DNA of 64,000 bases from NCBI GenBank assembly GCA_025594325.1, contig JANHCV010000003.1:1798001-1862000 (forward strand), in the 5' to 3' direction. This stretch comes from Blastocladiella emersonii ATCC 22665 (lineage: Eukaryota; Fungi; Blastocladiomycota). Numbering within the stretch: the first letter of the stretch is position 1; every line of letters starts with the position of its first letter. Both the position numbers and the translations under genes were made by a program. The notes beneath the pieces are model-generated. The model saw only the letters and a list, made by a program, of their open reading frames with translations, had not been told where the DNA came from and searched no databases. This document shows positions 27,910 to 54,695 of the stretch, in pieces.

Positions 27910-28410
27910 AACGAGAGGGGAGCCAGAGTGGGGCCAGCCGCCACGGTGCATCGAGAAGGCGAGGCGGCGCCGCTCGCAACGTCTCTCATCTGAAACGGGG
28001 CGCTCCGCCAGCGCCACAGTGGATGCGAGTGACGCGAACACTCACGAGCGGGCGCGACGCGACGCGATCACAGCCGTGATCGACGACCTGATCCAGCACT
28101 TAACAGACTTGGATCGCACGAGAGCTTGAGCTCGGTAGGATTGTAAGAGCCAAGTGATCGACTAAGCACGTTCGCGAGCGACTACGTCGTGCGGGTGTGT
28201 GCTCAACCGTCAACCTGCCGTACACGCACGGTCAGCCGTCGATGAGCGGTTCGCGTCATCTCAGTTACATGGGCTCTCGGTGATAGCAAGGCTGCGAATG
28301 CGATAGACGGACGAGCAGCTTGACGAAAACTGCCCGACGTGTTCGAGCGTCAACCTCGATCCCCGACTTTGGGACCACGTTGCGACACCGCGACGGACGC
28401 GCGGAAGCCC
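27910..28410. repeat. Diverged outer extension of the palindrome (homologous to about 53827-54385 on the opposite strand)
   Basis: Manual alignment, e.g. gtgcgatccaagtctgt(t/a)aagtgctggatca is shared, with many transitions and small indels; the outer limit is approximate. Confidence 0.75.
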
Positions 28411-29028
28411 GCAACGAGACGCGGTGGCTCGCGACCAGAGCTCAACTCTCAAGCTTGAGCGCGGAACTGCCGTTTCAACGCGAGCACGCGTCAGGCCATC
28501 GACTCCTCCGTGAACACCCGCGCGCTTTGTCAGCAACGCTTGCAGGTGCACTATTTCCGTGGACGTGGTGGACGCTCGGAAGAGTCATCGGCGGGCCGCA
28601 GTGGCGCAGCAGCTGGCGCAGCCCCAGCCTCCCAGCCCCACGGTGGCGTCGCAGCCGCGCGGCCGCGTCCCAGTGCGCCGGATTTACGAACCTTTGACTT
28701 GCGACCAGTCAGGCCTCGCCTCGCGAGTTTCAACATGCGGCGACTCGGCCCCAGTTCCATGGCGCGTGTTGCTCGCAGCGCTCCGCTCACCTCAGCGATC
28801 GCTCGCGGCGTGCGCAAAAAATGGACCCACGGCGTGGATTGCGCGTCTGGTGCAGGACCCGCGGCCATGGACTCCCGCCAAAAAGTATAAAGCACGCGTG
28901 CTCCCGCGGCCTCGGGACCTGAAGAACGCCATCATCTCGAGCATCACACTCGCCCTAGACCGCCACCGCCGTCGTCGACGCACACACGCACTAGATCGAC
29001 CACCGACAACACCTAGAAGATCCTCGCC

Positions 29029-30606
29029 ATGACCAAGTCGTCCGCCGTGTTCCTCGCCGCCGCGGTCATTGCGCTCGCCAGCATCACCTCGTCGGCTGGC
29101 GTCAACGCTGCGCCGGCCGCCAACGCCGCGTCGCCGCTCCTCATCCCGGACGCGCGCGAGCTCATCAACGTGTCGTTTGGCAAGACCGACATTGAGTGGG
29201 TCTTCCCCGGCCAGTCCAACGCCCGTCGTCCGAGCGCCAACAACAACAACAACAACTCGGGCAACGTCGTGTTCCCCGGCCAGTCGGGCCGTCGCACCAC
29301 CACCGCGGCCGCCACGCCCAAGCCGACCGCTCCGGCCAACGGCGCCATCGCGTTCCCCGACGACGACGGTAACGTCGTGTTCCCCGGCCAGCCCTCCAAC
29401 CCGCCGCCCACCAAGCCCATCGCCCCCATCAACCCGACGCCCGTGACGCGCAACGGCCACGTCGTCGTGTTCGAGCAGACCATCGACATTGCCCAGGTCC
29501 AGCCCGGCGCCAAGAACATCTACTGGTCGCGCCTGCACTTTGACCGGTCCAAGACCAAGCTGCGCGAGAACTTTATCCGCGTCGACTTTCCGGGATTCGG
29601 CGAGGACCTGCCTGGCGACATCCTGCGCCTGACGTCGCTCGCCGACGGCGCGGTCCAGTACCTCAACTTCGAGTCGATTGAGCAGTGGAACTTCCGCTCG
29701 GCCGTCTTCAACGGCGGCAAGGTCAAGGTCGAGCTGCTCGCCGACCCCAACACGGACCCCAAGGAGAAGCCGTCGATCGTCGTGTCGCAGCTCGAGACCA
29801 ACACGCAGACCGGGTTCGGCTCCAACAAGGCGCAGCTGCCGCCGCCGGCGTCGCTGTGCACGGCCGCCGACGAGCGCAAGGCGTCGTCGGACGTTCGCAG
29901 CGTGCGCATCTTCCCCGTAGGTTGCACCGCCTGGACCATCACGGACAAGGCCGGGTGCCACGTCACGGCGGGCCACTGCTTTGACGGCAAGGTGCTCGAG
30001 GACCAGATCATCCAGATGAACGTGCCGCAGTCGGCGGTCATCACGTACGCGGGCCAGAAGACGGCGATCCTGCGCCACCCGCACCCCAAGTTCCAGTTCG
30101 CCGTCGACACCAAGTCGGTGCAGTTCAACCTGACGGCGCTCGGGCTCGGCGAGCAGGCCGAGGACTGGGCGTACTTTGGCACCTTCCCGAACCCCAACAC
30201 GGGCATGACGCACCGCGAGACCATCGGCAACAAGGCGTACACGCTCGCGGCCGTCGACCCCGCCACGGGCGACATTGCCCCGAACCAGGTCAAGGTCGGC
30301 AGCACGGTCAAGATCTACGGCTACGGCTTCGTCACGGCGCAGGCGCGCAAGCAGATGTCGCAGGTGCAGCAGGAGGACGACGGCAAGGTCGTCTCTTTCC
30401 CGGACCGCTTCCACATCCGCCACCGTATTGATACTGAGGGGGGCAATAGTGGCAGTGCTATCGCGATCGGAGACGTCGCCGTGGGCATCCACACCAACGG
30501 CGGGTGCACCGCGCGCTCCGCCGCGTCGGCCAACACGGGCTCGCTCGTCTCCATGCCCGCCTTCCAGCGCGCCATCAAGAACCCCAAGGGCGTGTGCAAG
30601 GCCTAA
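29029..30606 (+). CDS. Secreted trypsin-like (S1/V8-type) serine protease, intronless
   Basis: Signal peptide; catalytic motifs VTAGHC, EDWA and DTEGGNSGS; long propeptide with repeated VFPGQ motifs. Confidence 0.88.
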   Translation: MTKSSAVFLAAAVIALASITSSAGVNAAPAANAASPLLIPDARELINVSFGKTDIEWVFPGQSNARRPSANNNNNNSGNVVFPGQSGRRTTTAAATPKPTAPANGAIAFPDDDGNVVFPGQPSNPPPTKPIAPINPTPVTRNGHVVVFEQTIDIAQVQPGAKNIYWSRLHFDRSKTKLRENFIRVDFPGFGEDLPGDILRLTSLADGAVQYLNFESIEQWNFRSAVFNGGKVKVELLADPNTDPKEKPSIVVSQLETNTQTGFGSNKAQLPPPASLCTAADERKASSDVRSVRIFPVGCTAWTITDKAGCHVTAGHCFDGKVLEDQIIQMNVPQSAVITYAGQKTAILRHPHPKFQFAVDTKSVQFNLTALGLGEQAEDWAYFGTFPNPNTGMTHRETIGNKAYTLAAVDPATGDIAPNQVKVGSTVKIYGYGFVTAQARKQMSQVQQEDDGKVVSFPDRFHIRHRIDTEGGNSGSAIAIGDVAVGIHTNGGCTARSAASANTGSLVSMPAFQRAIKNPKGVCKA

Positions 30607-30949
30607 GACTGCGCACTGTTTGCATCTCTCTATAATAGCATAGCAATAGTTTGTCTCATCAATCCCGTCCGTCGCGCGAAAGAGTGTGGCGCATCGCGCT
30701 CATGTGAGTGGCGCATCGCGTTCTTTCGGGCCATGAAACCCCGCGACACGACCGCTCCTTGAGCTCCCGCTCTTGCACAAGCTACCAGAGTGAATAGCGA
30801 GCTCAATAATTTCAGCAGCATGAACAGCGTCGAACCATTTTGCGCAGAGTTTACGTGGTACCCGTTGCGGGCTTGTCGCATTGGAGGGGGTGTCTTGACG
30901 AGCGGTCGAAGCAGCACACCAGAAAGCGACGCGACCCAGACCTGAGCAT

Positions 30950-31090
30950 CACATGATTGATCGACGCGTCTCACGACGAACGTCGTGGTGTGCAGCCGCG
31001 GCACGATCGTTGAGCAGGGCGCGGCCGCCGCGCTCATGGCCATCGAGGGCGGTGTGTTCGCGTCCATGGTGCGCGAGCACCAGACCAAGC
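30950..31090 (+). pseudogene. Relic of an ABC-transporter nucleotide-binding-domain C-terminus
   Basis: VVCSRGTIVEQG....LMAIEGGVFASMV matches the VxxxGxIVExGxxxELxxxxGxYxxLV tail; no upstream domain. Confidence 0.5.
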
Positions 31091-31552
31091 GCGTCAATGC
31101 ACCTGCTCCCGCGATCATCTATCCCGAGACGGCCGAGTCGCGCGCCGCTCGTCGTCGTTCCGCCACATCGGCACGAACCGCGCGAGCAAGGCCTTCGACT
31201 CGCAGCTCTGCTGTTGCGCGTACATGGGAGACGCGTGTCGGAGACATCACGTGGCGCTGCCGATCACTGCTCCGATCGACGCCACATCGCCGTCGCTGCG
31301 TCAGCTGTTCTGTTCTATTTGAGGGAGTGTTATACACCACGATCTTGCCCTGTGCGGCCCCATGGACTTCATGCATTCAACAGATTAAGAGTCTCACTCT
31401 GGATACGTTCCCTTGCGGGGTGTATTCTGGGTACTGAGCGACGGGTCACCGTCCGCATCACGTCCGTTGGGTCAAGCGAGGCAGGTGACGGCGACCAAGT
31501 CGCTCCCTCCCCTCTCGTCCTCGAACCGAGGTGTCGAGAGGTACACCGAAGC

Positions 31553-31924
31553 GGCCTAGTCGGGCCCGCGCCGCGGAGCGTCGTGCGCGCGGGTTCATCC
31601 CTCGGGAGGGCCGGGGTTCCCATGCGGTAGGGGGTCCTTAGTCGCATTGAGCAGAGGCCTATCCGGGCCCGCGCCGCGGAGCGTCGTGCGCGCGGGTTCA
31701 TCCTTCGGGAGGGCGCGGGTCTCGACGCGTTTCGAGCCCGTCTCGCGACACTAACATCAAACGGCCTATCCGGGCCCGCGCCGCGGAGCGTCGTGCGCGC
31801 GGGCTCATCCTTCGGGAGGGCCGGGTTCCCCTCGCGTCAGGGGATCCTGAATATCACGTCACTTTGGCCTATCCGGGCCCGCGCCACGGAGCGTCGTGCG
31901 CGCGGGTTCATCCTTCGGGAGGGC
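31553..31924 (+). repeat. Array of four 59-bp direct repeats with unique 44/48/44-bp spacers (structured-RNA candidate)
   Basis: Repeats at 31553, 31656, 31763 and 31866; consensus GGCCTATCCGGGCCCGCGCCGCGGAGCGTCGTGCGCGCGGGTTCATCCTTCGGGAGGGC. Confidence 0.95.
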
Positions 31925-32499
31925 CCAGGACTTTGGCCGCAGTGCAAGCCTGAGTGTCGACCAAGAACACGAGCCTCGAGACCATGGCCAGGGCGGCGCC
32001 ACGGCGGCGCCGGCCCCCTCGCGCCATCGGCCCCCGCCGCCGGCGGGTGCCGGTTCTGGGAGCGCAGTTTTTTTTCGCGTCCAGATCTCAACACGTGAGT
32101 TCACCTGAGTAAGGAAACCAATTTCCGTCCGGTTTCATCGGGTTTTGAGATCGCCAAGAGAAGGCGCAAGCACCGGCGTGAGTTGAGCGAAGCTGGGGAG
32201 CGCGGCGGAGATCGCAGCGCGGAAAATGAAACGCAACAGCCGGGTGTTCGCGGCGCCCGCTCGGGCGCCTGGGTCGCCGCCCGCAAGTCGCACCTCGTTC
32301 TCTCTCCCCAGAACCCTTTCGCCCGCGAACGTACTACGCACTTCTCACGGAAACTTGGCGCTTCTGAGCACGCTCATCGTCGTCTCGCGTCGCACACTCC
32401 TGTCTCTGGCTCACAAACGCAATCCCACCTCGCCTTCGCCGTCTCCGTCCACGTCGTCGTCCGCCGAGGCCCTGATCCCTGCCGAGGACTGCTGCGATG

Positions 32500-32790
32500 A
32501 GGACGATGACGAGGAGGGAACGTGGCACGGTTTGTCGATTTGGCCGTGTACCTGATGTACGCGCGATACATTCATTGGCTAGCCCGCCGCGCTCGGTCAT
32601 TTCTTCTTGATTGTCAGACCCATTGCGAGCGAGACGGTCGCCAACTACTGGGCAGGCCACTGGAGCGAGGCAGGCGGCCGCGACGTGGGCTTCAACCTGA
32701 GAATGTTCGGCGCGCTTAATGGGTCCATTGGCCTGTTCAAGTTCGCGGCCAACTGGGTGCTTGCGTGTCTCATGGTCAAGGCCATATGGC
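32500..32790 (+). pseudogene. Relic of an ABCC/MRP-type linker and second transmembrane domain
   Basis: EEG..VDLAVYLMYAR and ANYWAGHWSE..FNLRMFGALNG.IGLF resemble the ABCC G-x-V..VY..Y and NYWLxxWS motifs; frameshifted. Confidence 0.5.
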
Positions 32791-33202
32791 ATGTACACAG
32801 ACCAATCGTCGGATCCGCGCTACATCGCCCCCATCGTCGCCATCGAACTCCAATGCGTGAAGTTGGGAATCTTGGAGCTTGAGCCGATGCCGGAGAATTG
32901 AAGGCGGGGGGTCGGCGAGGTGACATCCTCTGCTGCTGCGCCACCCACCTGCTGCGCCACCCATTTGCGCCGCCCGATATGCAGTGCCACAACCGTCGAG
33001 CTGGCACTCTTCGGCTGAGCCGAATGCACTTTGGCGTAATGCACTCGCACTTGGCAAAATGCAGGACGTTGCATGCCACAAACGCGTCATCCGGGCCAGA
33101 GCTATAAAGCAACTGTGGTAACCTCTCAGGCTCTGTTCCTTCTCCCGTCCTAGGCCGCGGACAGTCCGACTGACTCACCACATCCCATTATCGTTCAAAA
33201 CA

Positions 33203-33901
33203 ATGTCCTTTCGTAGGGTGCTTACCCAAGTGCGGACTCTGGCCACCGTTTCGCCACACCTCATACGTGTCCCCCCAAAGTCAAACGTCACAGCTGCCGT
33301 CAATCGCTCCGCAGGACGTTATGCAGGTCGGTCGGCACTCAAATCGCAGGAGCAATCGCACGGACTTCCGAAAGAAGCAGCTCGCAGCTCAAACGCCATG
33401 ATGCCCGAGGCACAGCAAATTCAACAGCAGCAGCCCAAGAATGGTTTGCAGCAGCAGCCACGGCTCGTGGAGATTGTCCATCGTGAGCATGCGGAACCAG
33501 GCGCAAAGAAGGCTTGGAGCCTCGAATCCAAGCACACGGTGTACGAGGTTGATGCGCAGGAGTTGGAACAAGTGGTGAAGCGCACAATTGATGCCTTCAA
33601 GTTAGCCCAAGCGGGTCCAGATCCAGAGCAGCGCACCACCAACCAAGTACAAATTTCTCCGCACGAGACGGTGACTTATCGCGAGCAAACGGGCTCAAAT
33701 CCGGACTCCGACTGGACCATCGACATCAAGTACAATATGCGCCAGAAGGGCAGGGTTGACCCGCAGAAGACTCAAGCGGCGATGGAGGCTGTGTTCAAAG
33801 CCTTCCGCGCCGCCGAAGCAATCATGGAAGAACCCGATGAGAACTTGTACTCGTGCAGCAGCAACAAGACGGGCAAGTCATCGGAAATGGAAGTCGAGTG
33901 A
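33203..33901 (+). CDS. Orphan 232-aa ORF with a presequence-like N-terminus
   Basis: ATG-started, non-repetitive ORF with visibly lower GC than the neighbouring genes; no family recognised. Confidence 0.45.
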   Translation: MSFRRVLTQVRTLATVSPHLIRVPPKSNVTAAVNRSAGRYAGRSALKSQEQSHGLPKEAARSSNAMMPEAQQIQQQQPKNGLQQQPRLVEIVHREHAEPGAKKAWSLESKHTVYEVDAQELEQVVKRTIDAFKLAQAGPDPEQRTTNQVQISPHETVTYREQTGSNPDSDWTIDIKYNMRQKGRVDPQKTQAAMEAVFKAFRAAEAIMEEPDENLYSCSSNKTGKSSEMEVE

Positions 33902-34621
33902 TGAATGACCTGGTCATATTGGCTGTCGTTGTTTGAAAACATGATTCGTGACTGCGATTGTATGCGAAGCTGGTGTACGAGTAAGTTGACTTTGGCATTA
34001 CTGCTGAGTCGCCAAGGTTCGTTGATTTCGGGTTCAGGCTGGTGAGAGCTGGCAACAAGTAGTCGCCCAACCGTTAGGCGGGTTGTGAGTTGTCGCTTGA
34101 GTTGAACTTGAGTAATCTTCAAGAGTCGTACTTGTACTGACCGCGCTGCTCCCAGTCGTTCAAATGGAACAAGTGCTTCAACTCGGGCATAGTGGATCGC
34201 TGACATTCAGACGCATGCGCTTGTCTTTCTCGCCTTGCGTACGTTTCGTCCCCACGGCGCCCGACAAAGCAACAACGCGCCCTCACGGTAGTCAGCGAGG
34301 AGGAGATCAGCGGCGGCCGCCGTTCCAGCACCGTGGGCTCTCTCTCTCTCTCTCGCAGAGCCGCTCTTCGGATCGAACCGTATCGGACACACAGCGACCG
34401 CCATCGTGAATTCGCCACTCGTTGCGTGGTTTAAGCAAAGGTAAGGACGGCCATCTGCACAAGCTCATCAACCCGCGTCTTGCGGTCTCCGCTGCTACGG
34501 CCATAGCTTCCAACGCCGCCCAAAAACACGCACAGCGCGGGCACTGCCCTGCGGCCGCCCGGCGCCAGCGACCAGATGCGCGCACCGTATGCAGCACTCA
34601 GGCTTCCCGCTGTGTCGCGTC

Positions 34622-34659
34622 GCGCGGTTCCCCGACCCTGGCGCGGTTCCCCGACCCTG
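34622..34659. repeat. 19-bp perfect tandem duplication (GCGCGGTTCCCCGACCCTG x2)
   Basis: Seen directly; mirrored in the right arm. Confidence 0.9.
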
Positions 34660-34959
34660 GCGGCGAGTATTGCCGACGAAGCGGCAATGTGCACATCTCG
34701 TTTAACCTGTACGCGATGGACCGTGGTCCGAATGGAAGCGCTCCCGCGGTGCGCAAGCACCGTACGTGGGGCGGGCTTTAGCCCTCGATTGAACACCAAA
34801 TGCTTTGGGTTTGGGTGTTCCAAGTATCATGTGCAGGTTTCTGCTGCAGCTGCCACCCTTCAAGCTATCGACTGACACAGGCGGGTGCAAACCAACACGT
34901 GCTTTGTGGACACGCGGAGGTGAGCGTAGCATTGCTGGCCAGCTGCCTGGCATCATGTA

Positions 34960-35247
34960 CTTGTCGTCGTCGTCGTTCTCGAACGACGACTTCTCGAGCG
35001 TGTCGGCCGAATTGCCGCGAACAGGGCTTTCCACACGTTGGTGTTGGTTTAGAGCAGGACCTGCAACAGGCGGATCTCGCGCTTGGGTGCCGCCCTTGTT
35101 GCGCGCAACGAGCAGCCCAAGGAACCGCTGGCTGACGCGGTACCCGACAAAGTTGAGCATGCGCTCGAGGTCCTGCACGCCCTTGGTGCTGCGCTGCGAG
35201 TACTGAACGAGCTTAGAAAAGAGGAAGCCGAAAGCCAACAGCGACAT
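34960..35247 (-). pseudogene. TRS31: TRAPP subunit TRS31/TRAPPC5 fragment
   Basis: SLLAFGFLFSKLVQYSQ..GVQDLERMLNFVGYRVSQRFL, then KREIRLLQVLL*TNTNVWKALF and ADTLEKS..END..YM in shifted frames. Confidence 0.75.
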
Positions 35248-36819
35248 GTCCGTGTTGCGCGGGCGGTTCGGGTTGCGGCTCAGGATCTGATCTGATCCGA
35301 ACCGTGATGTATGGGCAGCATTCCCGTTCTCCTCTACACGGATACGGCATCCGACCAGCTAGCGAGCCGGCTTGCCCTGATTGCTTCCACTACTCGCGTG
35401 GCACTGTTGCCTCAAACATGTGTTCAGCGCGACGCCTCAAGCAGGAATCTCCACACTCCATGGCGGAGATCTCGCTCACAACTTGTGCAAGCGATCTCAT
35501 CATACCTGATGCGAGAGCTATGAACCTTTTCCGTCGTCAGTTGGGCTGAGTTTGAGTTGACCAAGGTTCGTGCTTTTACCTCGACAAGGAAGGGAGGCGA
35601 GCGGACTGCCTCCATTGCGACGCGTGCGCGCGAGGTCACGCGGAGGTGAGCGTCGCGTCGCCAGCCGCGCCTTCGGCCTCGCTCACGTGACACAACTTAG
35701 CTTTATAAATTTGAGATGCATCGTAAACATTTTTCTGAGGGCAGATTCGTGATCAGCGACCTTCAGAGGCCCGGAATATGTCAAAAACTCCGAGTCGAGG
35801 TGTCGGGGTACCGAGAACTCGTCCGACCGTGCAAAGTTGAAAAAAACTTTCGGTTTGGTCGCTCGGACGAAAAACGCACTTAAGGCTTAGCTTCTTGAAT
35901 TGCATTGTGTTACCGAATCACCTGACACTTTGACAACATACATAGTATAAATTATAAGACGCTCCGGCACTCGCAGAATAATTATACCATTTAATCTGAC
36001 GCTCAGGGCCACGGTGTGAGTTAGCTTCAGTAATCGAGCCTCCCTTCGCCCACCGCCAAAGGCGCCACGCCTCCGCCGCGGAGGAGGCCTGCCGCGCTCC
36101 CGCTCCCGCTCCCGTTGATCCCTCTGCAGCGCTAACCCGACGCATCGAACGGAGTCCACACCACCTGCAACGTAAGCATGTCATCGAAATAAGACAAGCT
36201 GTCCGATATCGTATGGGCGCGAGCCCGCTGGTTGCCCACCATCTCCAGTGACCAACACCAACCCTGGCACTCCATTTCTAGGCCCGGGACCAGCCCGGCG
36301 TCTACGAGACGCCCAACGTGTCCGCCCTCCCCGCGGCTGCCATGGCCGAGGACTCGCACAACGCGGGACTTGACGGGGCCGAAATGGACGACGCGGTGGC
36401 AGGGGCAACGGGCCACGGGCCCGCCGAGTTCAGCGACGGCGAGGACACGGACAGCGTCGTGGTCCGCACGCGGCTGTCGGTCCGCGCGGCCGCTGGCACC
36501 TTTGCAAATGCTGGTGTTGACGCGTCAGGTGCCGGTACGCTGCGCGATGATTGCGGTTGGGTTGGGCGATGCTTACAACCCCGCCTGGCATTGTAGAATT
36601 CTCGGGCGCCGTCAGCTCGCGCACCACCATGTTCCGCACGTACAACCGCGCGGCGTACAAGGCGCCGGCGCGGTCGCGGGCCGTGCGCGGGTCGCCCGCG
36701 CAGAAGCTGGCGCGGCTGTTCTTGTGCTACTATACTAGCGGCAGTCCACCACCGCACGAGCTCATGCGCGACGCGTCGACGCATGCGCCCGAGCACGGCC
36801 TCGTTCTATATCCCGGCCG

Positions 36820-37790
36820 CGCGGCTTGCCACGCTCGGCAGCGCCGACTCAGAGGCGCCCAAACGACCAGCTCGCGTCCAGTGTCCACCGCATCGTCCAC
36901 AAGCTGCGCCGCGGTAACGAGAAGGCGCCCGTCCCGCGCTGCGCCGCGACTACTGGATGAAGGATGAGGCGGGCAAAGAGTGCTACAACTGCAAGAAAGA
37001 CGCCCTTCTCAACGTTCCGCCGGAAGCACCATTGCCGTATCTGGTATGGACTCTTCAGTGCTCGCTCAGACGCGGCTTCCGCTAACGACCCTCATTCTTA
37101 ACGGCCAGATCTTGTGCTACCGGTGCGCGTCCAACACTATCCTGGGCGAGTCGCTCGAGCTCGTCGGCTTCACCTGCGTGTGCGACTACGGCTATTGCCT
37201 CCACGTGGTGCGGTCCTACTCGGAGAACCGGGCGTCGCCGCCAGCTTTGCCGCGCCTGATCTCGCGGCCCTCGCCGCCCGTCAAGGACGAGGACTGCCGC
37301 CGCACCTTCTTCCACCGGCACCAGTCGCTGCCCACGCGCACGTTCGTCGTCCTCGCCAAGTTCTGGCTCGAACCCCAACACGCTGCACCCGCTGCTCGAC
37401 CCGACGAGCATGACCCACCCCAAGCGGCTCATCCAGCTGCTGCTCTTGGCACGCCGCGGGCTCAGTACCGCGTGGGAGCAGATCATGTGCGATATGACGG
37501 CCGAGGTGCGCCAAAAGGTGAGCTGCACTGCACCGTGCAGGACATGGACGTGCGGCACTTCATCAAGTTCAAGAAGGCGCCCAGCGCCAAGCCCGCCGAC
37601 ACCTTCTTCCTGAGCGGCGCGGCGACCAAGAAGACGCTCGCGTACCGCAAGATGGAGCAGACGATGCAGACCCCGCGCATCATGGTCCTCACGTTCCTGC
37701 TCGAGTACAACCGCGTGCAGGACCAGTTCATCGGCATCAACCCCGCCATCTCGCAGGCGCAAGAATACCTGCTCAACCTGCAACCGCCTC
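36820..37790 (+). pseudogene. FAB1: FAB1/PIKfyve relic (FYVE domain plus part of the CCT-like domain)
   Basis: RDYWMKDE.GKECYNCK..FRRKHHCR, GQILC..CASN, DMDVRHFIKFKK, PRIMVLTFLLEYNRV and QEYLLNL; several frameshifts. Confidence 0.8.
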
Positions 37791-38236
37791 CTCGCCCTCG
37801 AGCCGCACGTGATCCTCATCAAGAGAAACGGCCGTGCGTACCGCCGCTGCGCGTGGCGGCGCTGTTGCGCTGGTCGGCTCTCTCTCGATTGGCGCTACGA
37901 CACTGCGTTCTCGATTCGCGGGTAGATAATGAATGAGATGATACGGATGATGATACATATTACACGTCAGTCAATCAAGTCAACCCGATCGCGCGCTGCA
38001 CGCCGCGCGCTGTACGTCCGACACGACGTGAGGCTCCCTAGCGCATGCGTCAACCTCGATTCGATGGCGGCGAGAGGAGCGCTAGCTTAGCCCATGGAAA
38101 TAACGCAAAGGGAATCTAATCTAATAATCTATGACCCATCTCCAAATGCAGAAACACCCACGACAGCAGTCCCAGCCTCACCCGCCGCGCGTCCCGCGTC
38201 CCGCGTGCGGCGTGCGGCGTGCGGCGACGACAACGG

Positions 38237-41207: not shown

Positions 41208-41499
41208 CGTCGTCGTCTCGATGGCGGTGAGGGGGTCGATGCTACCTACGACTACACAATTGTGCGCGCGCCGAAGGTGAGTGAGCGATCCGGGCGTGCG
41301 TGTCTCGCGTCGGAGCGCAACGTGGTGGTACCGACCGACGAGTGTAGTGGTGTAGCGTTGGAGGTGGCTGTCGAGTGCGACGACGACGGCGACGAGGATG
41401 GGAGGATGGTGGTGCTGCTTCGACGATGATACAGTGGATCAAGACGACGGCCCGCCGAGGTTGGGCGGGCGCCCGTCCCGTCGAACACCATGAGTGGGA

Positions 41500-42370
41500 G
41501 TGACGTGGCGGCCGGAGCCGTGATGATGTTGGCGCCCGCAAAGTGGCCAGTGTTCTCGAGGACGCCGAGCTTGATGTTGTAGGCCACCGAGACGTCCATC
41601 TGGTACAGGTGCTCGAGCGCGCTACGCGCAACCGTCTTCTCGACGAGGACCACGTGCTGAGCCCGCGGCGCGCCGTGAGCCGCTGGATGGACCGCTTGAG
41701 GCGGCCTGTGCTCGTCGGGTCGAGCAGCGGGCGCGGCGTGTTGGGCTCGAGCCAGAACTCGGTGATGAGGACGGACGCGCGCGGGGGCAGCGACCGGCGC
41801 CGGTGGAGGAGGGTGCGAGGGCGGTCCTCGTCCTCGACGGGCGTCGAGGGCCGCGAGATCGATCTGCGACTGCAGGAGGACCAGGGTCGGGGGCGGACGC
41901 GGCGGGGGCGGCAGCGACTCCTGGTTCTCCGAGTAGGACCGGATCACGTTTAGGCAGTAGTCGCACACGCGGATGAAGCCGAGAGGAAGCCGAGAGGAAG
42001 CCGAGCGGCTCGGCCCGGCTCGGCTCGGTGGGGAAGGTGTTGGATGCGCGCGCCGGCAGCAGAGGAAGGAAGACCTGGCCGCTGCGTTTGCGGCAGTGGT
42101 TAGCAATACTCACAAAAGCACAGTGAGTTTAGCTCCCGTACCAAACTACCAACCGCGGCAATGGTGCTTGCGGTGGAATTCGGAGAGGGGCGACATGCAG
42201 TTGCAGCAGCAGCACATCATGCACGCCTCGTCCTTCATCCAGTAGTCGCGGCGCCACGCGGGCGCCTCGTCGTCACCGCGGCGCAGTTTGCGGATGATGA
42301 TGATGCGGTGGAAACCCGACTCGAGCTGGTCGTCAGGCGCCTCCGAGTCGGCGTCGCCGTGCGTGGCGAG
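41500..42370 (-). pseudogene. FAB1: Second, independently decayed FAB1 relic (inverted relative to 36820-37790)
   Basis: RRDYWMKDE..FHRKHHCR, GQVF, RVCDYCLNVIRSYSEN and VSVAYNIKL; clear nucleotide homology to about 36820-37470. Confidence 0.75.
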
Positions 42371-45300: not shown

Positions 45301-46989
45301 TCATCTCGTGGTGCCAAAGGCGTGTCGAGACAGAGTCCCGCGCCGCGGAGCTGGCCACCGCGACGCGACGCGACGCGACGGGCAACCCGCTCGCTGGTTG
45401 CAGCGTCGGGACCAAGTACCGAGCGCAACTGGCCCCGTCCGCTCGATCGACAAACAGAGAGTGCGGTGTGTAAGGTATCTCAAGAGCTGTCCAAGGTGCC
45501 CGACGGGACGCCGCTCGAGTCCGCGGATCGCGACAGGGCGATCATTGGTGGTACTGCATCCGCTTATCATCGACAGTGCCGTTGCGGGTAGTCCGAGTCT
45601 CACCAGAAGCAGGGGTGGGTGCTGGGTGCTGGCTGCACCGGGGCGATCGAAGCGACGCGACGAAACGAAACGCGACGCGACGCGCCCGATTCGGAACGTC
45701 TCACCTCACGTGAGGCGCACGCACGCCGTGTCTCTCGCCCCTTTTGCTCACGTGCGCTGTGTTTCGCGACGCGTCGGCGACGCGTTTTTCGTCTCGCCTC
45801 GGGTCCCCCCGGTGCCGGCCACGTCACCGTGCCCCCGCCACCGCGTCGTTCACTTTGGCCCCGTCAAGTCCCGCGTTGTGCGAGTCCTCGGCCATGGCAG
45901 CCGCGGGGAGGGCGGACACGTTGGGCGTCTCGTAGACGCCGGGCTGGTCCCGGGCCTAGAAATGGAGTGCCAGGGTTGGTGTTGGTCACTGGAGATGGTG
46001 GGCAACCAGCGGGCTCGCGCCCATACGATATCGGACAGCTTGTCTTATTTCGATGACATGCTTACGTTGCAGGTGGTGTGGACTCCGTTCGATGCGTCGG
46101 GTTAGCGCTGCAGAGGGATCAACGGGAGCGGGAGCGGGAGCGCGGCAGGCCTCCTCCGCGGCGGAGGCGTGGCGCCTTTGGCGGTGGGCGAAGGGAGGCT
46201 CGATTACTGAAGCTAACTCACACCGTGGCCCTGAGCGTCAGATTAAATGGTATAATTATTCTGCGAGTGCCGGAGCGTCTTATAATTTATACTATGTATG
46301 TTGTCAAAGTGTCAGGTGATTCGGTAACACAATGCAATTCAAGAAGCTAAGCCTTAAGTGCGTTTTTCGTCCGAGCGACCAAACCGAAAGTTTTTTTCAA
46401 CTTTGCACGGTCGGACGAGTTCTCGGTACCCCGACACCTCGACTCGGAGTTTTTGACATATTCCGGGCCTCTGAAGGTCGCTGATCACGAATCTGCCCTC
46501 AGAAAAATGTTTACGATGCATCTCAAATTTATAAAGCTAAGTTGTGTCACGTGAGCGAGGCCGAAGGCGCGGCTGGCGACGCGACGCTCACCTCCGCGTG
46601 ACCTCGCGCGCACGCGTCGCAATGGAGGCAGTCCGCTCGCCTCCCTTCCTTGTCGAGGTAAAAGCACGAACCTTGGTCAACTCAAACTCAGCCCAACTGA
46701 CGACGGAAAAGGTTCATAGCTCTCGCATCAGGTATGATGAGATCGCTTGCACAAGTTGTGAGCGAGATCTCCGCCATGGAGTGTGGAGATTCCTGCTTGA
46801 GGCGTCGCGCTGAACACATGTTTGAGGCAACAGTGCCACGCGAGTAGTGGAAGCAATCAGGGCAAGCCGGCTCGCTAGCTGGTCGGATGCCGTATCCGTG
46901 TAGAGGAGAACGGGAATGCTGCCCATACATCACGGTTCGGATCAGATCAGATCCTGAGCCGCAACCCGAACCGCCCGCGCAACACGGAC

Positions 46990-47277
46990 ATGTCGCTGTT
47001 GGCTTTCGGCTTCCTCTTTTCTAAGCTCGTTCAGTACTCGCAGCGCAGCACCAAGGGCGTGCAGGACCTCGAGCGCATGCTCAACTTTGTCGGGTACCGC
47101 GTCAGCCAGCGGTTCCTTGGGCTGCTCGTTGCGCGCAACAAGGGCGGCACCCAAGCGCGAGATCCGCCTGTTGCAGGTCCTGCTCTAAACCAACACCAAC
47201 GTGTGGAAAGCCCTGTTCGCGGCAATTCGGCCGACACGCTCGAGAAGTCGTCGTTCGAGAACGACGACGACGACAAG
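46990..47277 (+). pseudogene. TRS31: TRS31 fragment (mirror copy)
   Basis: Same translation as 34960-35247. Confidence 0.75.
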
Positions 47278-48335
47278 TACATGATGCCAGGCAGCTGGCC
47301 AGCAATGCTACGCTCACCTCCGCGTGTCCACAAAGCACGTGTTGGTTTGCACCCGCCTGTGTCAGTCGATAGCTTGAAGGGTGGCAGCTGCAGCAGAAAC
47401 CTGCACATGATACTTGGAACACCCAAACCCAAAGCATTTGGTGTTCAATCGAGGGCTAAAGCCCGCCCCACGTACGGTGCTTGCGCACCGCGGGAGCGCT
47501 TCCATTCGGACCACGGTCCATCGCGTACAGGTTAAACGAGATGTGCACATTGCCGCTTCGTCGGCAATACTCGCCGCCAGGGTCGGGGAACCGCGCCAGG
47601 GTCGGGGAACCGCGCGACGCGACACAGCGGGAAGCCTGAGTGCTGCATACGGTGCGCGCATCTGGTCGCTGGCGCCGGGCGGCCGCAGGGCAGTGCCCGC
47701 GCTGTGCGTGTTTTTGGGCGGCGTTGGAAGCTATGGCCGTAGCAGCGGAGACCGCAAGACGCGGGTTGATGAGCTTGTGCAGATGGCCGTCCTTACCTTT
47801 GCTTAAACCACGCAACGAGTGGCGAATTCACGATGGCGGTCGCTGTGTGTCCGATACGGTTCGATCCGAAGAGCGGCTCTGCGAGAGAGAGAGAGAGAGC
47901 CCACGGTGCTGGAACGGCGGCCGCCGCTGATCTCCTCCTCGCTGACTACCGTGAGGGCGCGTTGTTGCTTTGTCGGGCGCCGTGGGGACGAAACGTACGC
48001 AAGGCGAGAAAGACAAGCGCATGCGTCTGAATGTCAGCGATCCACTATGCCCGAGTTGAAGCACTTGTTCCATTTGAACGACTGGGAGCAGCGCGGTCAG
48101 TACAAGTACGACTCTTGAAGATTACTCAAGTTCAACTCAAGCGACAACTCACAACCCGCCTAACGGTTGGGCGACTACTTGTTGCCAGCTCTCACCAGCC
48201 TGAACCCGAAATCAACGAACCTTGGCGACTCAGCAGTAATGCCAAAGTCAACTTACTCGTACACCAGCTTCGCATACAATCGCAGTCACGAATCATGTTT
48301 TCAAACAACGACAGCCAATATGACCAGGTCATTCA

Positions 48336-49034
48336 TCACTCGACTTCCATTTCCGATGACTTGCCCGTCTTGTTGCTGCTGCACGAGTACAAGTTCTCAT
48401 CGGGTTCTTCCATGATTGCTTCGGCGGCGCGGAAGGCTTTGAACACAGCCTCCATCGCCGCTTGAGTCTTCTGCGGGTCAACCCTGCCCTTCTGGCGCAT
48501 ATTGTACTTGATGTCGATGGTCCAGTCGGAGTCCGGATTTGAGCCCGTTTGCTCGCGATAAGTCACCGTCTCGTGCGGAGAAATTTGTACTTGGTTGGTG
48601 GTGCGCTGCTCTGGATCTGGACCCGCTTGGGCTAACTTGAAGGCATCAATTGTGCGCTTCACCACTTGTTCCAACTCCTGCGCATCAACCTCGTACACCG
48701 TGTGCTTGGATTCGAGGCTCCAAGCCTTCTTTGCGCCTGGTTCCGCATGCTCACGATGGACAATCTCCACGAGCCGTGGCTGCTGCTGCAAACCATTCTT
48801 GGGCTGCTGCTGTTGAATTTGCTGTGCCTCGGGCATCATGGCGTTTGAGCTGCGAGCTGCTTCTTTCGGAAGTCCGTGCGATTGCTCCTGCGATTTGAGT
48901 GCCGACCGACCTGCATAACGTCCTGCGGAGCGATTGACGGCAGCTGTGACGTTTGACTTTGGGGGGACACGTATGAGGTGTGGCGAAACGGTGGCCAGAG
49001 TCCGCACTTGGGTAAGCACCCTACGAAAGGACAT
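48336..49034 (-). CDS. Orphan 232-aa ORF (mirror copy)
   Basis: Same translation as 33203-33901. Confidence 0.45.
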   Translation of the reverse strand: MSFRRVLTQVRTLATVSPHLIRVPPKSNVTAAVNRSAGRYAGRSALKSQEQSHGLPKEAARSSNAMMPEAQQIQQQQPKNGLQQQPRLVEIVHREHAEPGAKKAWSLESKHTVYEVDAQELEQVVKRTIDAFKLAQAGPDPEQRTTNQVQISPHETVTYREQTGSNPDSDWTIDIKYNMRQKGRVDPQKTQAAMEAVFKAFRAAEAIMEEPDENLYSCSSNKTGKSSEMEVE

Positions 49035-49446
49035 TGTTTTGAACGATAATGGGATGTGGTGAGTCAGTCGGACTGTCCGCGGCCTAGGACGGGAGAAGGA
49101 ACAGAGCCTGAGAGGTTACCACAGTTGCTTTATAGCTCTGGCCCGGATGACGCGTTTGTGGCATGCAACGTCCTGCATTTTGCCAAGTGCGAGTGCATTA
49201 CGCCAAAGTGCATTCGGCTCAGCCGAAGAGTGCCAGCTCGACGGTTGTGGCACTGCATATCGGGCGGCGCAAATGGGTGGCGCAGCAGGTGGGTGGCGCA
49301 GCAGCAGAGGATGTCACCTCGCCGACCCCCCGCCTTCAATTCTCCGGCATCGGCTCAAGCTCCAAGATTCCCAACTTCACGCATTGGAGTTCGATGGCGA
49401 CGATGGGGGCGATGTAGCGCGGATCCGACGATTGGTCTGTGTACAT

Positions 49447-49737
49447 GCCATATGGCCTTGACCATGAGACACGCAAGCACCCAGTTGGCCGCGAACTTGA
49501 ACAGGCCAATGGACCCATTAAGCGCGCCGAACATTCTCAGGTTGAAGCCCACGTCGCGGCCGCCTGCCTCGCTCCAGTGGCCTGCCCAGTAGTTGGCGAC
49601 CGTCTCGCTCGCAATGGGTCTGACAATCAAGAAGAAATGACCGAGCGCGGCGGGCTAGCCAATGAATGTATCGCGCGTACATCAGGTACACGGCCAAATC
49701 GACAAACCGTGCCACGTTCCCTCCTCGTCATCGTCCT
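49447..49737 (-). pseudogene. ABCC transmembrane relic (mirror copy)
   Basis: Mirror of 32500-32790. Confidence 0.5.
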
Positions 49738-50312
49738 CATCGCAGCAGTCCTCGGCAGGGATCAGGGCCTCGGCGGACGACGACGTGGACGGAGACGGCG
49801 AAGGCGAGGTGGGATTGCGTTTGTGAGCCAGAGACAGGAGTGTGCGACGCGAGACGACGATGAGCGTGCTCAGAAGCGCCAAGTTTCCGTGAGAAGTGCG
49901 TAGTACGTTCGCGGGCGAAAGGGTTCTGGGGAGAGAGAACGAGGTGCGACTTGCGGGCGGCGACCCAGGCGCCCGAGCGGGCGCCGCGAACACCCGGCTG
50001 TTGCGTTTCATTTTCCGCGCTGCGATCTCCGCCGCGCTCCCCAGCTTCGCTCAACTCACGCCGGTGCTTGCGCCTTCTCTTGGCGATCTCAAAACCCGAT
50101 GAAACCGGACGGAAATTGGTTTCCTTACTCAGGTGAACTCACGTGTTGAGATCTGGACGCGAAAAAAAACTGCGCTCCCAGAACCGGCACCCGCCGGCGG
50201 CGGGGGCCGATGGCGCGAGGGGGCCGGCGCCGCCGTGGCGCCGCCCTGGCCATGGTCTCGAGGCTCGTGTTCTTGGTCGACACTCAGGCTTGCACTGCGG
50301 CCAAAGTCCTGG

Positions 50313-50684
50313 GCCCTCCCGAAGGATGAACCCGCGCGCACGACGCTCCGTGGCGCGGGCCCGGATAGGCCAAAGTGACGTGATATTCAGGATCCCCTGA
50401 CGCGAGGGGAACCCGGCCCTCCCGAAGGATGAGCCCGCGCGCACGACGCTCCGCGGCGCGGGCCCGGATAGGCCGTTTGATGTTAGTGTCGCGAGACGGG
50501 CTCGAAACGCGTCGAGACCCGCGCCCTCCCGAAGGATGAACCCGCGCGCACGACGCTCCGCGGCGCGGGCCCGGATAGGCCTCTGCTCAATGCGACTAAG
50601 GACCCCCTACCGCATGGGAACCCCGGCCCTCCCGAGGGATGAACCCGCGCGCACGACGCTCCGCGGCGCGGGCCCGACTAGGCC
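50313..50684 (-). repeat. 59-bp repeat-spacer array (mirror copy)
   Basis: Reverse complement of 31553-31924. Confidence 0.95.
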
Positions 50685-51146
50685 GCTTCGGTGTACCTCT
50701 CGACACCTCGGTTCGAGGACGAGAGGGGAGGGAGCGACTTGGTCGCCGTCACCTGCCTCGCTTGACCCAACGGACGTGATGCGGACGGTGACCCGTCGCT
50801 CAGTACCCAGAATACACCCCGCAAGGGAACGTATCCAGAGTGAGACTCTTAATCTGTTGAATGCATGAAGTCCATGGGGCCGCACAGGGCAAGATCGTGG
50901 TGTATAACACTCCCTCAAATAGAACAGAACAGCTGACGCAGCGACGGCGATGTGGCGTCGATCGGAGCAGTGATCGGCAGCGCCACGTGATGTCTCCGAC
51001 ACGCGTCTCCCATGTACGCGCAACAGCAGAGCTGCGAGTCGAAGGCCTTGCTCGCGCGGTTCGTGCCGATGTGGCGGAACGACGACGAGCGGCGCGCGAC
51101 TCGGCCGTCTCGGGATAGATGATCGCGGGAGCAGGTGCATTGACGC

Positions 51147-51287
51147 GCTTGGTCTGGTGCTCGCGCACCATGGACGCGAACACACCGCCCTCGATGGCCA
51201 TGAGCGCGGCGGCCGCGCCCTGCTCAACGATCGTGCCGCGGCTGCACACCACGACGTTCGTCGTGAGACGCGTCGATCAATCATGTG
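51147..51287 (-). pseudogene. ABC NBD C-terminal relic (mirror copy)
   Basis: Mirror of 30950-31090. Confidence 0.5.
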
Positions 51288-51630
51288 ATGCTCAGGTCTG
51301 GGTCGCGTCGCTTTCTGGTGTGCTGCTTCGACCGCTCGTCAAGACACCCCCTCCAATGCGACAAGCCCGCAACGGGTACCACGTAAACTCTGCGCAAAAT
51401 GGTTCGACGCTGTTCATGCTGCTGAAATTATTGAGCTCGCTATTCACTCTGGTAGCTTGTGCAAGAGCGGGAGCTCAAGGAGCGGTCGTGTCGCGGGGTT
51501 TCATGGCCCGAAAGAACGCGATGCGCCACTCACATGAGCGCGATGCGCCACACTCTTTCGCGCGACGGACGGGATTGATGAGACAAACTATTGCTATGCT
51601 ATTATAGAGAGATGCAAACAGTGCGCAGTC

Positions 51631-53208
51631 TTAGGCCTTGCACACGCCCTTGGGGTTCTTGATGGCGCGCTGGAAGGCGGGCATGGAGACGAGCGAGCCC
51701 GTGTTGGCCGACGCGGCGGAGCGCGCGGTGCACCCGCCGTTGGTGTGGATGCCCACGGCGACGTCTCCGATCGCGATAGCACTGCCACTATTGCCCCCCT
51801 CAGTATCAATACGGTGGCGGATGTGGAAGCGGTCCGGGAAAGAGACGACCTTGCCGTCGTCCTCCTGCTGCACCTGCGACATCTGCTTGCGCGCCTGCGC
51901 CGTGACGAAGCCGTAGCCGTAGATCTTGACCGTGCTGCCGACCTTGACCTGGTTCGGGGCAATGTCGCCCGTGGCGGGGTCGACGGCCGCGAGCGTGTAC
52001 GCCTTGTTGCCGATGGTCTCGCGGTGCGTCATGCCCGTGTTGGGGTTCGGGAAGGTGCCAAAGTACGCCCAGTCCTCGGCCTGCTCGCCGAGCCCGAGCG
52101 CCGTCAGGTTGAACTGCACCGACTTGGTGTCGACGGCGAACTGGAACTTGGGGTGCGGGTGGCGCAGGATCGCCGTCTTCTGGCCCGCGTACGTGATGAC
52201 CGCCGACTGCGGCACGTTCATCTGGATGATCTGGTCCTCGAGCACCTTGCCGTCAAAGCAGTGGCCCGCCGTGACGTGGCACCCGGCCTTGTCCGTGATG
52301 GTCCAGGCGGTGCAACCTACGGGGAAGATGCGCACGCTGCGAACGTCCGACGACGCCTTGCGCTCGTCGGCGGCCGTGCACAGCGACGCCGGCGGCGGCA
52401 GCTGCGCCTTGTTGGAGCCGAACCCGGTCTGCGTGTTGGTCTCGAGCTGCGACACGACGATCGACGGCTTCTCCTTGGGGTCCGTGTTGGGGTCGGCGAG
52501 CAGCTCGACCTTGACCTTGCCGCCGTTGAAGACGGCCGAGCGGAAGTTCCACTGCTCAATCGACTCGAAGTTGAGGTACTGGACCGCGCCGTCGGCGAGC
52601 GACGTCAGGCGCAGGATGTCGCCAGGCAGGTCCTCGCCGAATCCCGGAAAGTCGACGCGGATAAAGTTCTCGCGCAGCTTGGTCTTGGACCGGTCAAAGT
52701 GCAGGCGCGACCAGTAGATGTTCTTGGCGCCGGGCTGGACCTGGGCAATGTCGATGGTCTGCTCGAACACGACGACGTGGCCGTTGCGCGTCACGGGCGT
52801 CGGGTTGATGGGGGCGATGGGCTTGGTGGGCGGCGGGTTGGAGGGCTGGCCGGGGAACACGACGTTACCGTCGTCGTCGGGGAACGCGATGGCGCCGTTG
52901 GCCGGAGCGGTCGGCTTGGGCGTGGCGGCCGCGGTGGTGGTGCGACGGCCCGACTGGCCGGGGAACACGACGTTGCCCGAGTTGTTGTTGTTGTTGTTGG
53001 CGCTCGGACGACGGGCGTTGGACTGGCCGGGGAAGACCCACTCAATGTCGGTCTTGCCAAACGACACGTTGATGAGCTCGCGCGCGTCCGGGATGAGGAG
53101 CGGCGACGCGGCGTTGGCGGCCGGCGCAGCGTTGACGCCAGCCGACGAGGTGATGCTGGCGAGCGCAATGACCGCGGCGGCGAGGAACACGGCGGACGAC
53201 TTGGTCAT
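51631..53208 (-). CDS. Secreted trypsin-like serine protease (mirror copy)
   Basis: Identical 525-aa translation to 29029-30606. Confidence 0.88.
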   Translation of the reverse strand: MTKSSAVFLAAAVIALASITSSAGVNAAPAANAASPLLIPDARELINVSFGKTDIEWVFPGQSNARRPSANNNNNNSGNVVFPGQSGRRTTTAAATPKPTAPANGAIAFPDDDGNVVFPGQPSNPPPTKPIAPINPTPVTRNGHVVVFEQTIDIAQVQPGAKNIYWSRLHFDRSKTKLRENFIRVDFPGFGEDLPGDILRLTSLADGAVQYLNFESIEQWNFRSAVFNGGKVKVELLADPNTDPKEKPSIVVSQLETNTQTGFGSNKAQLPPPASLCTAADERKASSDVRSVRIFPVGCTAWTITDKAGCHVTAGHCFDGKVLEDQIIQMNVPQSAVITYAGQKTAILRHPHPKFQFAVDTKSVQFNLTALGLGEQAEDWAYFGTFPNPNTGMTHRETIGNKAYTLAAVDPATGDIAPNQVKVGSTVKIYGYGFVTAQARKQMSQVQQEDDGKVVSFPDRFHIRHRIDTEGGNSGSAIAIGDVAVGIHTNGGCTARSAASANTGSLVSMPAFQRAIKNPKGVCKA

Positions 53209-54695
53209 GGCGAGGATCTTCTAGGTGTTGTCGGTGGTCGATCTAGTGCGTGTGTGCGTCGACGACGGCGGTGGCGGTCTAGGGCGAGTGTGATGCTCGA
53301 GATGATGGCGTTCTTCAGGTCCCGAGGCCGCGGGAGCACGCGTGCTTTATACTTTTTGGCGGGAGTCCATGGCCGCGGGTCCTGCACCAGACGCGCAATC
53401 CACGCCGTGGGTCCATTTTTTGCGCACGCCGCGAGCGATCGCTGAGGTGAGCGGAGCGCTGCGAGCAACACGCGCCATGGAACTGGGGCCGAGTCGCCGC
53501 ATGTTGAAACTCGCGAGGCGAGGCCTGACTGGTCGCAAGTCAAAGGTTCGTAAATCCGGCGCACTGGGACGCGGCCGCGCGGCTGCGACGCCACCGTGGG
53601 GCTGGGAGGCTGGGGCTGCGCCAGCTGCTGCGCCACTGCGGCCCGCCGATGACTCTTCCGAGCGTCCACCACGTCCACGGAAATAGTGCACCTGCAAGCG
53701 TTGCTGACAAAGCGCGCGGGTGTTCACGGAGGAGTCGATGGCCTGACGCGTGCTCGCGTTGAAACGGCAGTTCCGCGCTCAAGCTTGAGAGTTGAGCTCT
53801 GGTCGCGAGCCACCGCGTCTCGTTGCAACCTTCCGCGCTTCCGCCGTCATGTCGCAACGCAGGTCGCAACGTGGCCCCAGAGTCGGGGATCGAGAATGGC
53901 ACTTGAACGCGCCAGGCTCGCAGCGGTCCGGCTGTGCTGTTTTTCCGCCCCTCGCGCTCTCAGTTCGTGGCAACCATGGCGTGATACGACTGAGTTCTCA
54001 CAGCTGGGCCGGAGCCAGCTGTTCATCCACGTCGGGTTGCGTGTCTGTGGCAGGACGACGGTTCACCGCCCCGACCCACGCGATGCAGTCGCAAGTGAGC
54101 AAACTTGGTCGATCAATCGGCTCTGGCAACACTATCGGGTTCGAACATTAGTGCGATCCAAGTCTGTAAAGTGCTGGATCACGTAAATGATCACGGCCAT
54201 GTTCGCGGCGTGTCGCGGCGCTTGTGCTTCTCATCTCAAGCGCGACGAACGGCACTACATCGGATCTCATCGTGGGGAACCCTTCTGCGAGTGGCCATGC
54301 ACGGGATCCAACTCGTTTGCTTCAGAGTGTCTACATCTCGCCGTTCCGATGTATCGCACGTCGTCAGAAGGGCTCCCCGTGTCAACAGCGGCGGCTTGCG
54401 GAACGACAAACTACGATTCTCGGCTTCCCGGTCCATGGTCACGGCTGTTCGCTAGTCTTGCCCTCCGCATTGAGGCAGACATTCGTGTCCCGCGAACCCA
54501 AGAGGAGCGCTTCCGAGCGCGTCGTTCACCCAGCACTGGCCCCACGTGAGCGTCCAAAGTGTGGCGTTGCGACGCGTCGTTGATGCGCGCCCGCCGCCCC
54601 GATCCTCCCGCTCCCCGCCGCCGGCACCCATGCATCTCCTCCCGCGTTAACTGGCCGCATTCGACACTACTACATCGTTCGATCGCGTCCACCAC

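Follow-up and report, generated by a model that had tools for sequence, protein, structure and literature searches.

The locus described here raises the question of how two inverted copies of about 8 kb can be identical to the last base while the homology that continues beyond their ends is clearly eroded. It lies in the window, by which we mean the whole 64,000-bp stretch analyzed, positions 1798001-1862000 of contig C15 in the 32.65-Mb, 21-contig genome of Blastocladiella emersonii ATCC 22665, and it is a real chromosomal palindrome located among ordinary housekeeping genes. The answer that we favor, and which the sequence makes probable, is that an old inverted duplication had its core kept, or very recently made, identical by gene conversion between its arms, and its spacer rebuilt later. 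An earlier annotation made from the window alone, referred to below as the initial annotation, had already proposed an old inverted duplication with a core homogenized between the arms, and each part of this proposal that can be tested on sequence (unique diverged flanks, relics of the FAB1 gene, and an outgroup locus on contig C1) agrees with it.

A repeat search detected a single large inverted repeat in the window, 8,030 nt long (28378-36407 versus 45830-53859), and a base-by-base comparison placed all 12 of its mismatches within the first 33 and the last 27 positions. The same comparison delimits the two arms:

28411 to 36380, forward strand: left arm, identical core of 7,970 bp
45857 to 53826, reverse strand: right arm, identical core

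The cores (28411-36380 versus 53826-45857) align over 7,970 bp ungapped and with 0 mismatches, which is exactly the length and the absence of indels read by the initial annotation, and the distance between them, 9,476 bp, corresponds to its 9.5-kb spacer. The spacer is not duplicated, and its sole internal symmetry is a diverged pair of FAB1 relics. In a search of the whole genome, the arm as a unit was found twice, both times at this locus. If the core diverged like its flank, the log10 P of observing 0 differences in 7,970 bp would be about -1400. The guanine-plus-cytosine (GC) content of the arms, 57-65%, is below that of the surroundings, with 57-64% in the arm outside the protease gene described below.

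Beyond both ends of the core, the homology does continue at clearly lower identity, as had been claimed, and it can be followed in four segments:

28043 to 28410, forward strand: left outer diverged flank (X), about 67-74% identical, with indels, to 54226-53827
53827 to 54226, reverse strand: right outer diverged flank (X'), identified by BLAST, MAFFT, and whole-genome search
36381 to 36407, forward strand: inner diverged edge of the left arm, 23 of 27 bases matching 45856-45830
45830 to 45856, reverse strand: inner diverged edge of the right arm, 23 of 27 bases matching the left edge

Gapped BLAST of the window against itself carried the alignment outward to 28043 and 54226. With MAFFT, the outer flanks showed a p-distance of 0.21-0.43, with indels, over approximately 28024-28410, and what lies further out is noise. 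The outer homology noted previously (27910-28410 and 53827-54385) was thus correctly perceived, but it is about 370 bp long and not about 500 bp, its ends having been set about 130-160 bp too far out; the inner pair (36381-36407 versus 45830-45856) was homologous as described. X and X' match only each other in the whole genome (E values of 1.4e-20 and 2.7e-6), and, being a unique pair, they are ruled out as copies of a dispersed repeat. A fresh fold-back or template-switch duplication does not fit, because the outer ends continue into this diverged homology; at the inner end, 27 diverged bases lie ahead of the joint, and microhomology occurs only at a secondary joint, at 45832/45834. Identity steps from about 70% to 100% and back, a pattern that is hard to explain unless sequence was transferred between the arms after the duplication. 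Selection cannot account for the identity of the core, because the arms are mostly noncoding.

Further inward, a second mirrored pair is formed by two relics of FAB1 (PIKfyve), whose intact gene resides on C1:

36749 to 37845, forward strand: left FAB1 relic, sharing 82-88% identity with FAB1 at C1:1530652-1531906
41451 to 42419, reverse strand: right FAB1 relic, mirror of the left one, 69% identical to it and 71-89% identical to FAB1 at C1:1530687-1532134

Gapped BLAST aligned 36820-37468 with 42375-41654 over 742 columns at 69% identity (E value of 2.5e-84). Both relics are genomic, intron-containing copies facing each other in mirror orientation; the FAB1 positions at which they start, 4652 and 4687 of locus L017, nearly coincide, and both are without the same stretch of approximately 150-190 bp. 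The shared 5' breakpoint and deletion, together with the mirror orientation, indicate that one ancestral relic was duplicated in inverted orientation, and two separate captures are ruled out by the common breakpoint and deletion. Three-sequence site patterns of the relics are unrootable and add nothing to this conclusion. The second inner pair reported by the initial annotation is therefore upheld as homologous, but not as contiguous with the right arm, since DNA imported from C1 intervenes.

Identity this complete also calls for a scrutiny of the assembly. According to the genome paper, PacBio HiFi reads with a mean length of 10.5 kb (about 6.4 Gb in total) were assembled with LJA (La Jolla Assembler), followed by purge_dups and by Pilon polishing with 65-bp reads, which yielded 21 contigs with an N50 of 2.02 Mb (PMC9730499). 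Arms that are merely similar, or one arm that was misjoined, could have been unified by the correction step of LJA or by Pilon, and the exact identity of the arms, the short-read polishing, and the purging of duplicated contigs (PMC9730499) are all compatible with such an artefact. Yet we regard it as very improbable. Polishing cannot make mirrored flanks and FAB1 relics at 67-78% identity, which prove a real inverted duplication, and the locus is internal to its contig, 1.83 Mb into the 2.64-Mb C15, with an asymmetric 9.5-kb spacer. HiFi reads of the mean length reported can span an 8-kb arm, and the same pipeline retained a single mismatch between the arms of another palindrome (C1:1349241-1358143), so it does not simply erase arm differences. 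The erasure of a few true differences would still leave identity rising in one step from about 70% to at least 99%. The genome paper makes no mention of palindromes or inverted repeats (PMC9730499). As a separate observation, it gives a total of 34.27 Mb in 21 contigs (PMC9730499) versus the 32.65 Mb in 21 contigs analyzed here.

An outgroup for the arms and the spacer is provided by C1:1629679-1638823, where an intact TRAPP gene (a), the paralog of spacer gene b (H9P43_000594), an intergenic region (c and d), and an intact dynamitin gene (e) follow each other in one orientation, with the intact FAB1 gene 100 kb off, at C1:1.530 Mb. No inverted repeat was found in this C1 region. Its counterparts in the window, and the one spacer segment that is unique, are as follows:

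34952 to 35287, reverse strand: TRAPP-subunit gene relic, sharing 89% identity with the intact gene (C1:1629679-1630002) and mirrored at 46950-47285
35608 to 36718, forward strand: copy of the dynamitin upstream region and 5' end, 83% identical to C1:1637666-1638823
38128 to 41442, reverse strand: spacer gene b, an open two-exon orphan of about 900 amino acids, 94% identical, indels included (3.1% substitutions), to C1:1631012-1634384 (H9P43_000594)
42420 to 43821, no strand assigned: unique noncoding stretch (u), right side only
43822 to 45834, reverse strand: C1 intergenic copy, pieces c and d, from C1:1634774-1636704, with 1.7-3.2% substitutions

From left to right, the spacer consists of a 341-bp dynamitin tail, the FAB1 relic, 282 bp for which no source was found, gene b, the mirrored FAB1 relic, the unique 1.4 kb, and the 2-kb C1 intergenic copy. 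With F standing for a FAB1 relic, the window reads a-inverted, e, F, b, F-inverted, d-inverted, c-inverted, e-inverted, a, an order that no single inversion or insertion produces from that of C1. The 282 bp (37846-38127) showed no significant similarity when considered as the decayed end of the left FAB1 relic (z of 1.1-1.7), an assignment by which gene b would have sat precisely at the original center, and a comparison of 42420-43821 with the 341-bp dynamitin tail gave a marginal z of 4.0 at a low score, which we did not use.

The two inner junctions differ in polarity. On the left, the dynamitin copy passes unbroken through the inner end of the arm, so that collinearity with the dynamitin DNA of C1 extends from the arm across the end of the core into the inner flank, whereas on the right the dynamitin copy stops at C1:1638484 and is joined to C1:1634774 at 45832/45834 with an overlap of 2-3 bp. 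Because the left side is collinear with C1 and the right side is broken, the right inner boundary is a secondary rearrangement joint, made in a preexisting arm. The distances are consistent with this reading: the right FAB1 relic is separated from the right arm by 3,410 bp (42420-45829) versus 341 bp (36408-36748) on the left, and X and the FAB1 relic lie 8,339 bp apart on the left versus 11,408 bp on the right, a difference of 3,069 bp that is accounted for exactly by a gain of 3,410 bp and a loss of 341 bp. The spacer is therefore not a simple remnant of the old duplication, since DNA imported later from C1 splits the relic pair from the right arm.

These junctions bear on the possibility that a single recent event produced the identity. 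A break near the right copy, followed by long-tract break-induced replication or template switching, would have recopied about 8 kb of the left arm; this copying would have been primed in the old diverged inverted copies and may belong to the same upheaval as the C1 imports. That the spacer was recently rebuilt from C1 DNA (2-3%), that 27 bp separate one joint from the end of the core, and that its 2-3 bp overlap is typical of template switching all lend such an event some plausibility. However, the two arms already differ by 15% in the 27 bp beside the joint; this end of the right arm therefore predates the joint and was not freshly copied, which argues against one event having created the right arm together with the imports. 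Strand invasion within flanks that are only 67-74% identical would be difficult as well.

The relative ages of the pieces are ordered by their Jukes-Cantor distances. X differs from X' by 0.43 and the FAB1 relic from its mirror copy by 0.26; the dynamitin piece differs from C1 by 0.16 and the TRAPP piece by 0.095, whereas b, c, and d differ from C1 by 0.02-0.03 and the arm cores from each other by 0. Arm pieces that are 9-16% away from their C1 sources thus show 0% difference between the arms. From these distances, the mosaic block and its inverted duplication are old, b and c-d arrived or last exchanged with C1 much later, and the identity of the core is the youngest feature. Dated throughout by internal proxies (the edges, the relics, and the C1 paralog), the duplication appears older than the identity of its arms implies.

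Our working model of how the locus was formed is as follows. A block of about 9.8 kb, comprising X, a secreted serine-protease gene, noncoding DNA, the TRAPP relic, the 5' fragment of dynamitin, and the FAB1 relic, would long ago have given rise to an inverted copy of itself. Since then, the FAB1 relics and the outermost 370 bp would have drifted to 67-78% identity, and over the 7,970 bp between them one arm would have been copied onto the other, likely by noncrossover homologous recombination in which a break in one arm is repaired from the other arm. Such conversion was probably repeated, the last time very recently, and if its tracts seldom reach the ends of the homology, the edges would drift and the homogenized domain would shrink. 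Later, at 2-3% divergence, the middle would have been rebuilt with two pieces that are contiguous on C1, the orphan gene b coming to lie centrally and the intergenic stretch against the right arm; the latter, together with the unique 1.4 kb, would have displaced 341 bp of the right copy and fixed the point at which the inner homology now ends. If such an intermediate were resolved as a crossover, the spacer would flip and two isomers could result, as the initial annotation also proposed; this is plausible here, and the assembly shows a single orientation.

Whether conversion is a habit of this genome can be approached through other palindromes. Nearby inverted matches of equal score to pieces of the arms led to four further palindromes, which we examined:

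C15:2333811-2343044: core of 2,437 bp, identical; inner edge of about 300-400 bp at about 88%; carries an 88% paralog of the protease
C1:2774686-2786445: core of 3,609 bp, identical; outer edge of about 270-350 bp at about 70%
C1:1349241-1358143: a single mismatch between arms of 3,883 bp; no eroded edge observed
C1:1200001-1212455: arms identical over 4,838 bp or more

Together with the window palindrome, these five show 1 difference in about 22.7 kb of arm, and the edges, where present (two of the four other palindromes), are 12-35% diverged. The two protease genes are convergent across the spacer in the window palindrome and divergent in that of C15:2333811-2343044, and this difference in orientation indicates that the two palindromes arose independently. 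A nearby direct (tandem) pair of paralogs in the window, 16362-17515 versus 18962-20063, is 74-82% identical and thus, unlike the inverted pairs, has not been homogenized. A Spo11-type TP6A_N domain was found at C17:1414606-1414770, within an open frame of 390 amino acids, so at least one meiotic break enzyme is encoded. Absence of the hairpin-opening factor Sae2/CtIP was considered as a possible reason for the palindromes; the Pfam SAE2 model had no match in the genome, a result that is uninformative given that its controls were prokaryotes.

The comparison among palindromes also weighs on the single-event explanation, since one-off events scattered randomly in time would be expected to leave cores of varied divergence, and yet the four other palindromes are identical or differ by one base in their cores, two of them with old edges. 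Taking this together with the junctions, and granting that no GC-bias signature of long-term conversion was seen, on small numbers, which would suit it, we consider a single recent event unlikely. Repeated arm-to-arm conversion acting steadily is favored instead, because all five cores have zero or near-zero divergence while the edges are old.

Several observations nevertheless weigh against this preference for conversion. X and X' on the one hand and the FAB1 relics on the other differ in distance (0.43 versus 0.26), and the inner 27 bp carry 4 mismatches versus about 0.8 expected if this edge dated from the 2-3% import. Compared with C1, b and c-d are ordered and oriented in a way that does not fit neatly, as no one simple step yields it. 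No sign of GC-biased conversion was seen, although the numbers are too small to carry weight: in the arm lineage of a 420-bp element carried by the arms, 5 weak-to-strong versus 11 strong-to-weak changes were counted, and the arms are also lower in GC than their surroundings. Finally, the case comes from one assembly of a single isolate, and the sequence by itself fits repeated conversion and a single recent long-tract event alike.

A broader proposition, which we put forward tentatively and consider rather doubtful, is that B. emersonii has an unusually active, genome-wide arm-to-arm copy correction on ordinary chromosomes, with dozens of gene-bearing palindromes whose cores would be fully or almost identical and whose edges would be 10-35% diverged. 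Such a system might be a fungal autosomal counterpart of the Y palindromes, perhaps keeping young lineage-specific genes paired, and the center of the window palindrome might have captured DNA from another chromosome during break repair.

The content of the arms was established from open reading frame (ORF), domain, and motif searches and from repeat analysis:

29029 to 30606, forward strand: secreted V8-like/trypsin_2 serine protease gene, 525 amino acids, intact, intronless
51631 to 53208, reverse strand: second copy of the protease gene, in the identical right arm
31553 to 31925, no strand assigned: tandem array of 3.6 units of 103 bp; mirror copy at about 50312-50684

The protease has a signal peptide and the TAGHC His and GGNSGS Ser motifs of the trypsin fold, and its ORF, with a GC content at third codon positions (GC3) of 0.94, gives the only strong coding signal in the arm. 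The family is common to Allomyces and Catenaria, has many bacterial relatives, and counts at least six paralogs in the B. emersonii genome. The protein encoded in the arm was matched on one contig only, and three other paralogs are single copy within the 10 kb around each of them. In practical terms, the outcome is two identical protease gene copies, the rest of the arms being noncoding or relic DNA; scans for tRNAs and Rfam families found none at the locus. The segments 30980-31209 and 32422-32783 are adjacent at C15:2407401-2407990 (83-86% identity), a site that is without the intervening 1.2 kb, which in the window includes the 103-bp array.

The element, of about 420 bp, is dispersed and AT-richer than the genome, with at least 40 matches of 73-92% identity across contigs, 8 of which are in arms of four other palindromes, on C1. 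In the window it occupies 35618-35902 and 46335-46619, with its left part at 34835-34940, and it is interrupted by an insert, about 690 bp long, that contains the TRAPP relic and is flanked by a diverged duplication of about 40 bp (34908-34948 resembles 35634-35672). Inverted 285-bp matches on C1 (arm positions 7208-7492) were first considered as the ends of 5-8 kb transposons but are really palindromes, each with a copy of this element. Three copies of equal score lie within 47 kb, at C1:4044900, 4076513 (+), and 4092092 (-), and may mark another large repeat or palindrome.

Gene b encodes a protein with no Pfam domain, whose only relative found is its own C1 paralog, H9P43_000594. Both genes keep long open frames with a GC3 of about 0.9, and between 38240-40919 and C1:1631132-1634380 the difference is 2.1-2.8% at each of the three codon positions; codon positions that are equally diverged suggest little or no purifying selection on the pair since it split.

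This inventory hardly suits a mobile element or an integrated virus whose terminal inverted repeats measure 8 kb, or a recombinase-run invertible switch, although long inverted ends around a gene-bearing middle and a GC content below that of the surroundings are reminiscent of such elements. The scanned ORFs of the arms and spacer yielded no domain of the transposase, integrase, polymerase, capsid, or recombinase type, and those of the flanks no recombinase domain, and the repeats measure 8 kb and not the tens of base pairs typical of inversion switches. The arm unit occurs only twice in the genome, its content consists of relics of host housekeeping genes (TRAPP, dynamitin, and FAB1) and of a protease from a host gene family, its flanks are diverged homologs and not target site duplications, and a 94% paralog of the central gene lies on C1 outside any repeat. 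We therefore give this explanation next to no credence.

Gene-conversion palindromes are textbook features of sex chromosomes and, to our knowledge, have hardly been described on ordinary fungal chromosomes, so that the structure reported here is of a known kind but new for B. emersonii. As far as its sequence can tell, the locus has the structural features by which gene-conversion palindromes are recognized in mammals. In the sex-chromosome palindromes of primates and mice (human Y P1-P8 and X palindromes; PMC8600007, PMC8327919, bioRxiv 10.1101/800185; see also Rozen et al. 2003, as cited in PMC5490193), arms that are >99.9% identical surround a unique spacer, as they do here. In both cases the arms carry a gene from a multicopy family, and their identity is far higher than a duplication of such age would allow, for which conversion between the arms is the explanation given; crossovers between the arms are expected to invert the spacer, as we propose here. 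The differences are that the window palindrome sits on an ordinary fungal chromosome among housekeeping genes and not in a nonrecombining sex-linked region, that its arms measure just 8 kb and contain, apart from one gene, mostly relic or noncoding DNA, and that its age comes from eroded edges and an outgroup paralog and not from orthologous palindromes in other species. X palindromes also show a GC-biased signature (PMC8981503), which the B. emersonii arms, on small numbers, do not.

A comparable setting is that of the parthenogenetic animals Folsomia candida (PMC5490193) and Adineta vaga (as cited there), which have many gene-bearing inverted duplications on ordinary chromosomes and, likewise, little or no known sex. 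These duplications are discussed as substrates of gene conversion, and for the palindromes of F. candida the wide range of synonymous divergence (Ks) led the authors to reject concerted evolution (PMC5490193); unlike them, the core of the window palindrome has no divergence. Within B. emersonii, the palindrome at C15:2333811-2343044 likewise holds a paralog of the window protease, but the window palindrome differs in having an outgroup locus, which shows that its spacer was rebuilt later. Plastid inverted repeats offer a further parallel, with two long copies held identical by copy correction and recombination inverting the single-copy region to give two isomers. They belong, however, to a multicopy organelle and form a conserved, functional repeat with the rRNA operon, whereas the present locus is nuclear, lineage specific, mostly relic, and in one orientation in the assembly.

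Taken as a single locus, the result is ordinary, namely, two identical copies of one secreted protease gene. Its interest lies more in being a clean and datable example, with eroded edges, an outgroup locus, and a spacer rebuilt after the duplication, in a genome that seems unusually rich in palindromes. If the set of palindromes is confirmed, B. emersonii would offer a tractable microbial system for measuring the rates of arm-to-arm conversion, of spacer inversion, and of palindrome birth and decay.

The palindrome is flanked on the left by genes for an AAA_5 dynein-related ATPase and Rav1 and on the right by genes for Vps52 and a spermidine-synthase-like protein. Elsewhere in the window, a small inverted repeat of 114 nt, 98% complementary, pairs 1003-1116 with 2654-2767, its arms being 1.5 kb apart, and an indoleamine 2,3-dioxygenase gene (3002-4846) lies directly downstream of it.

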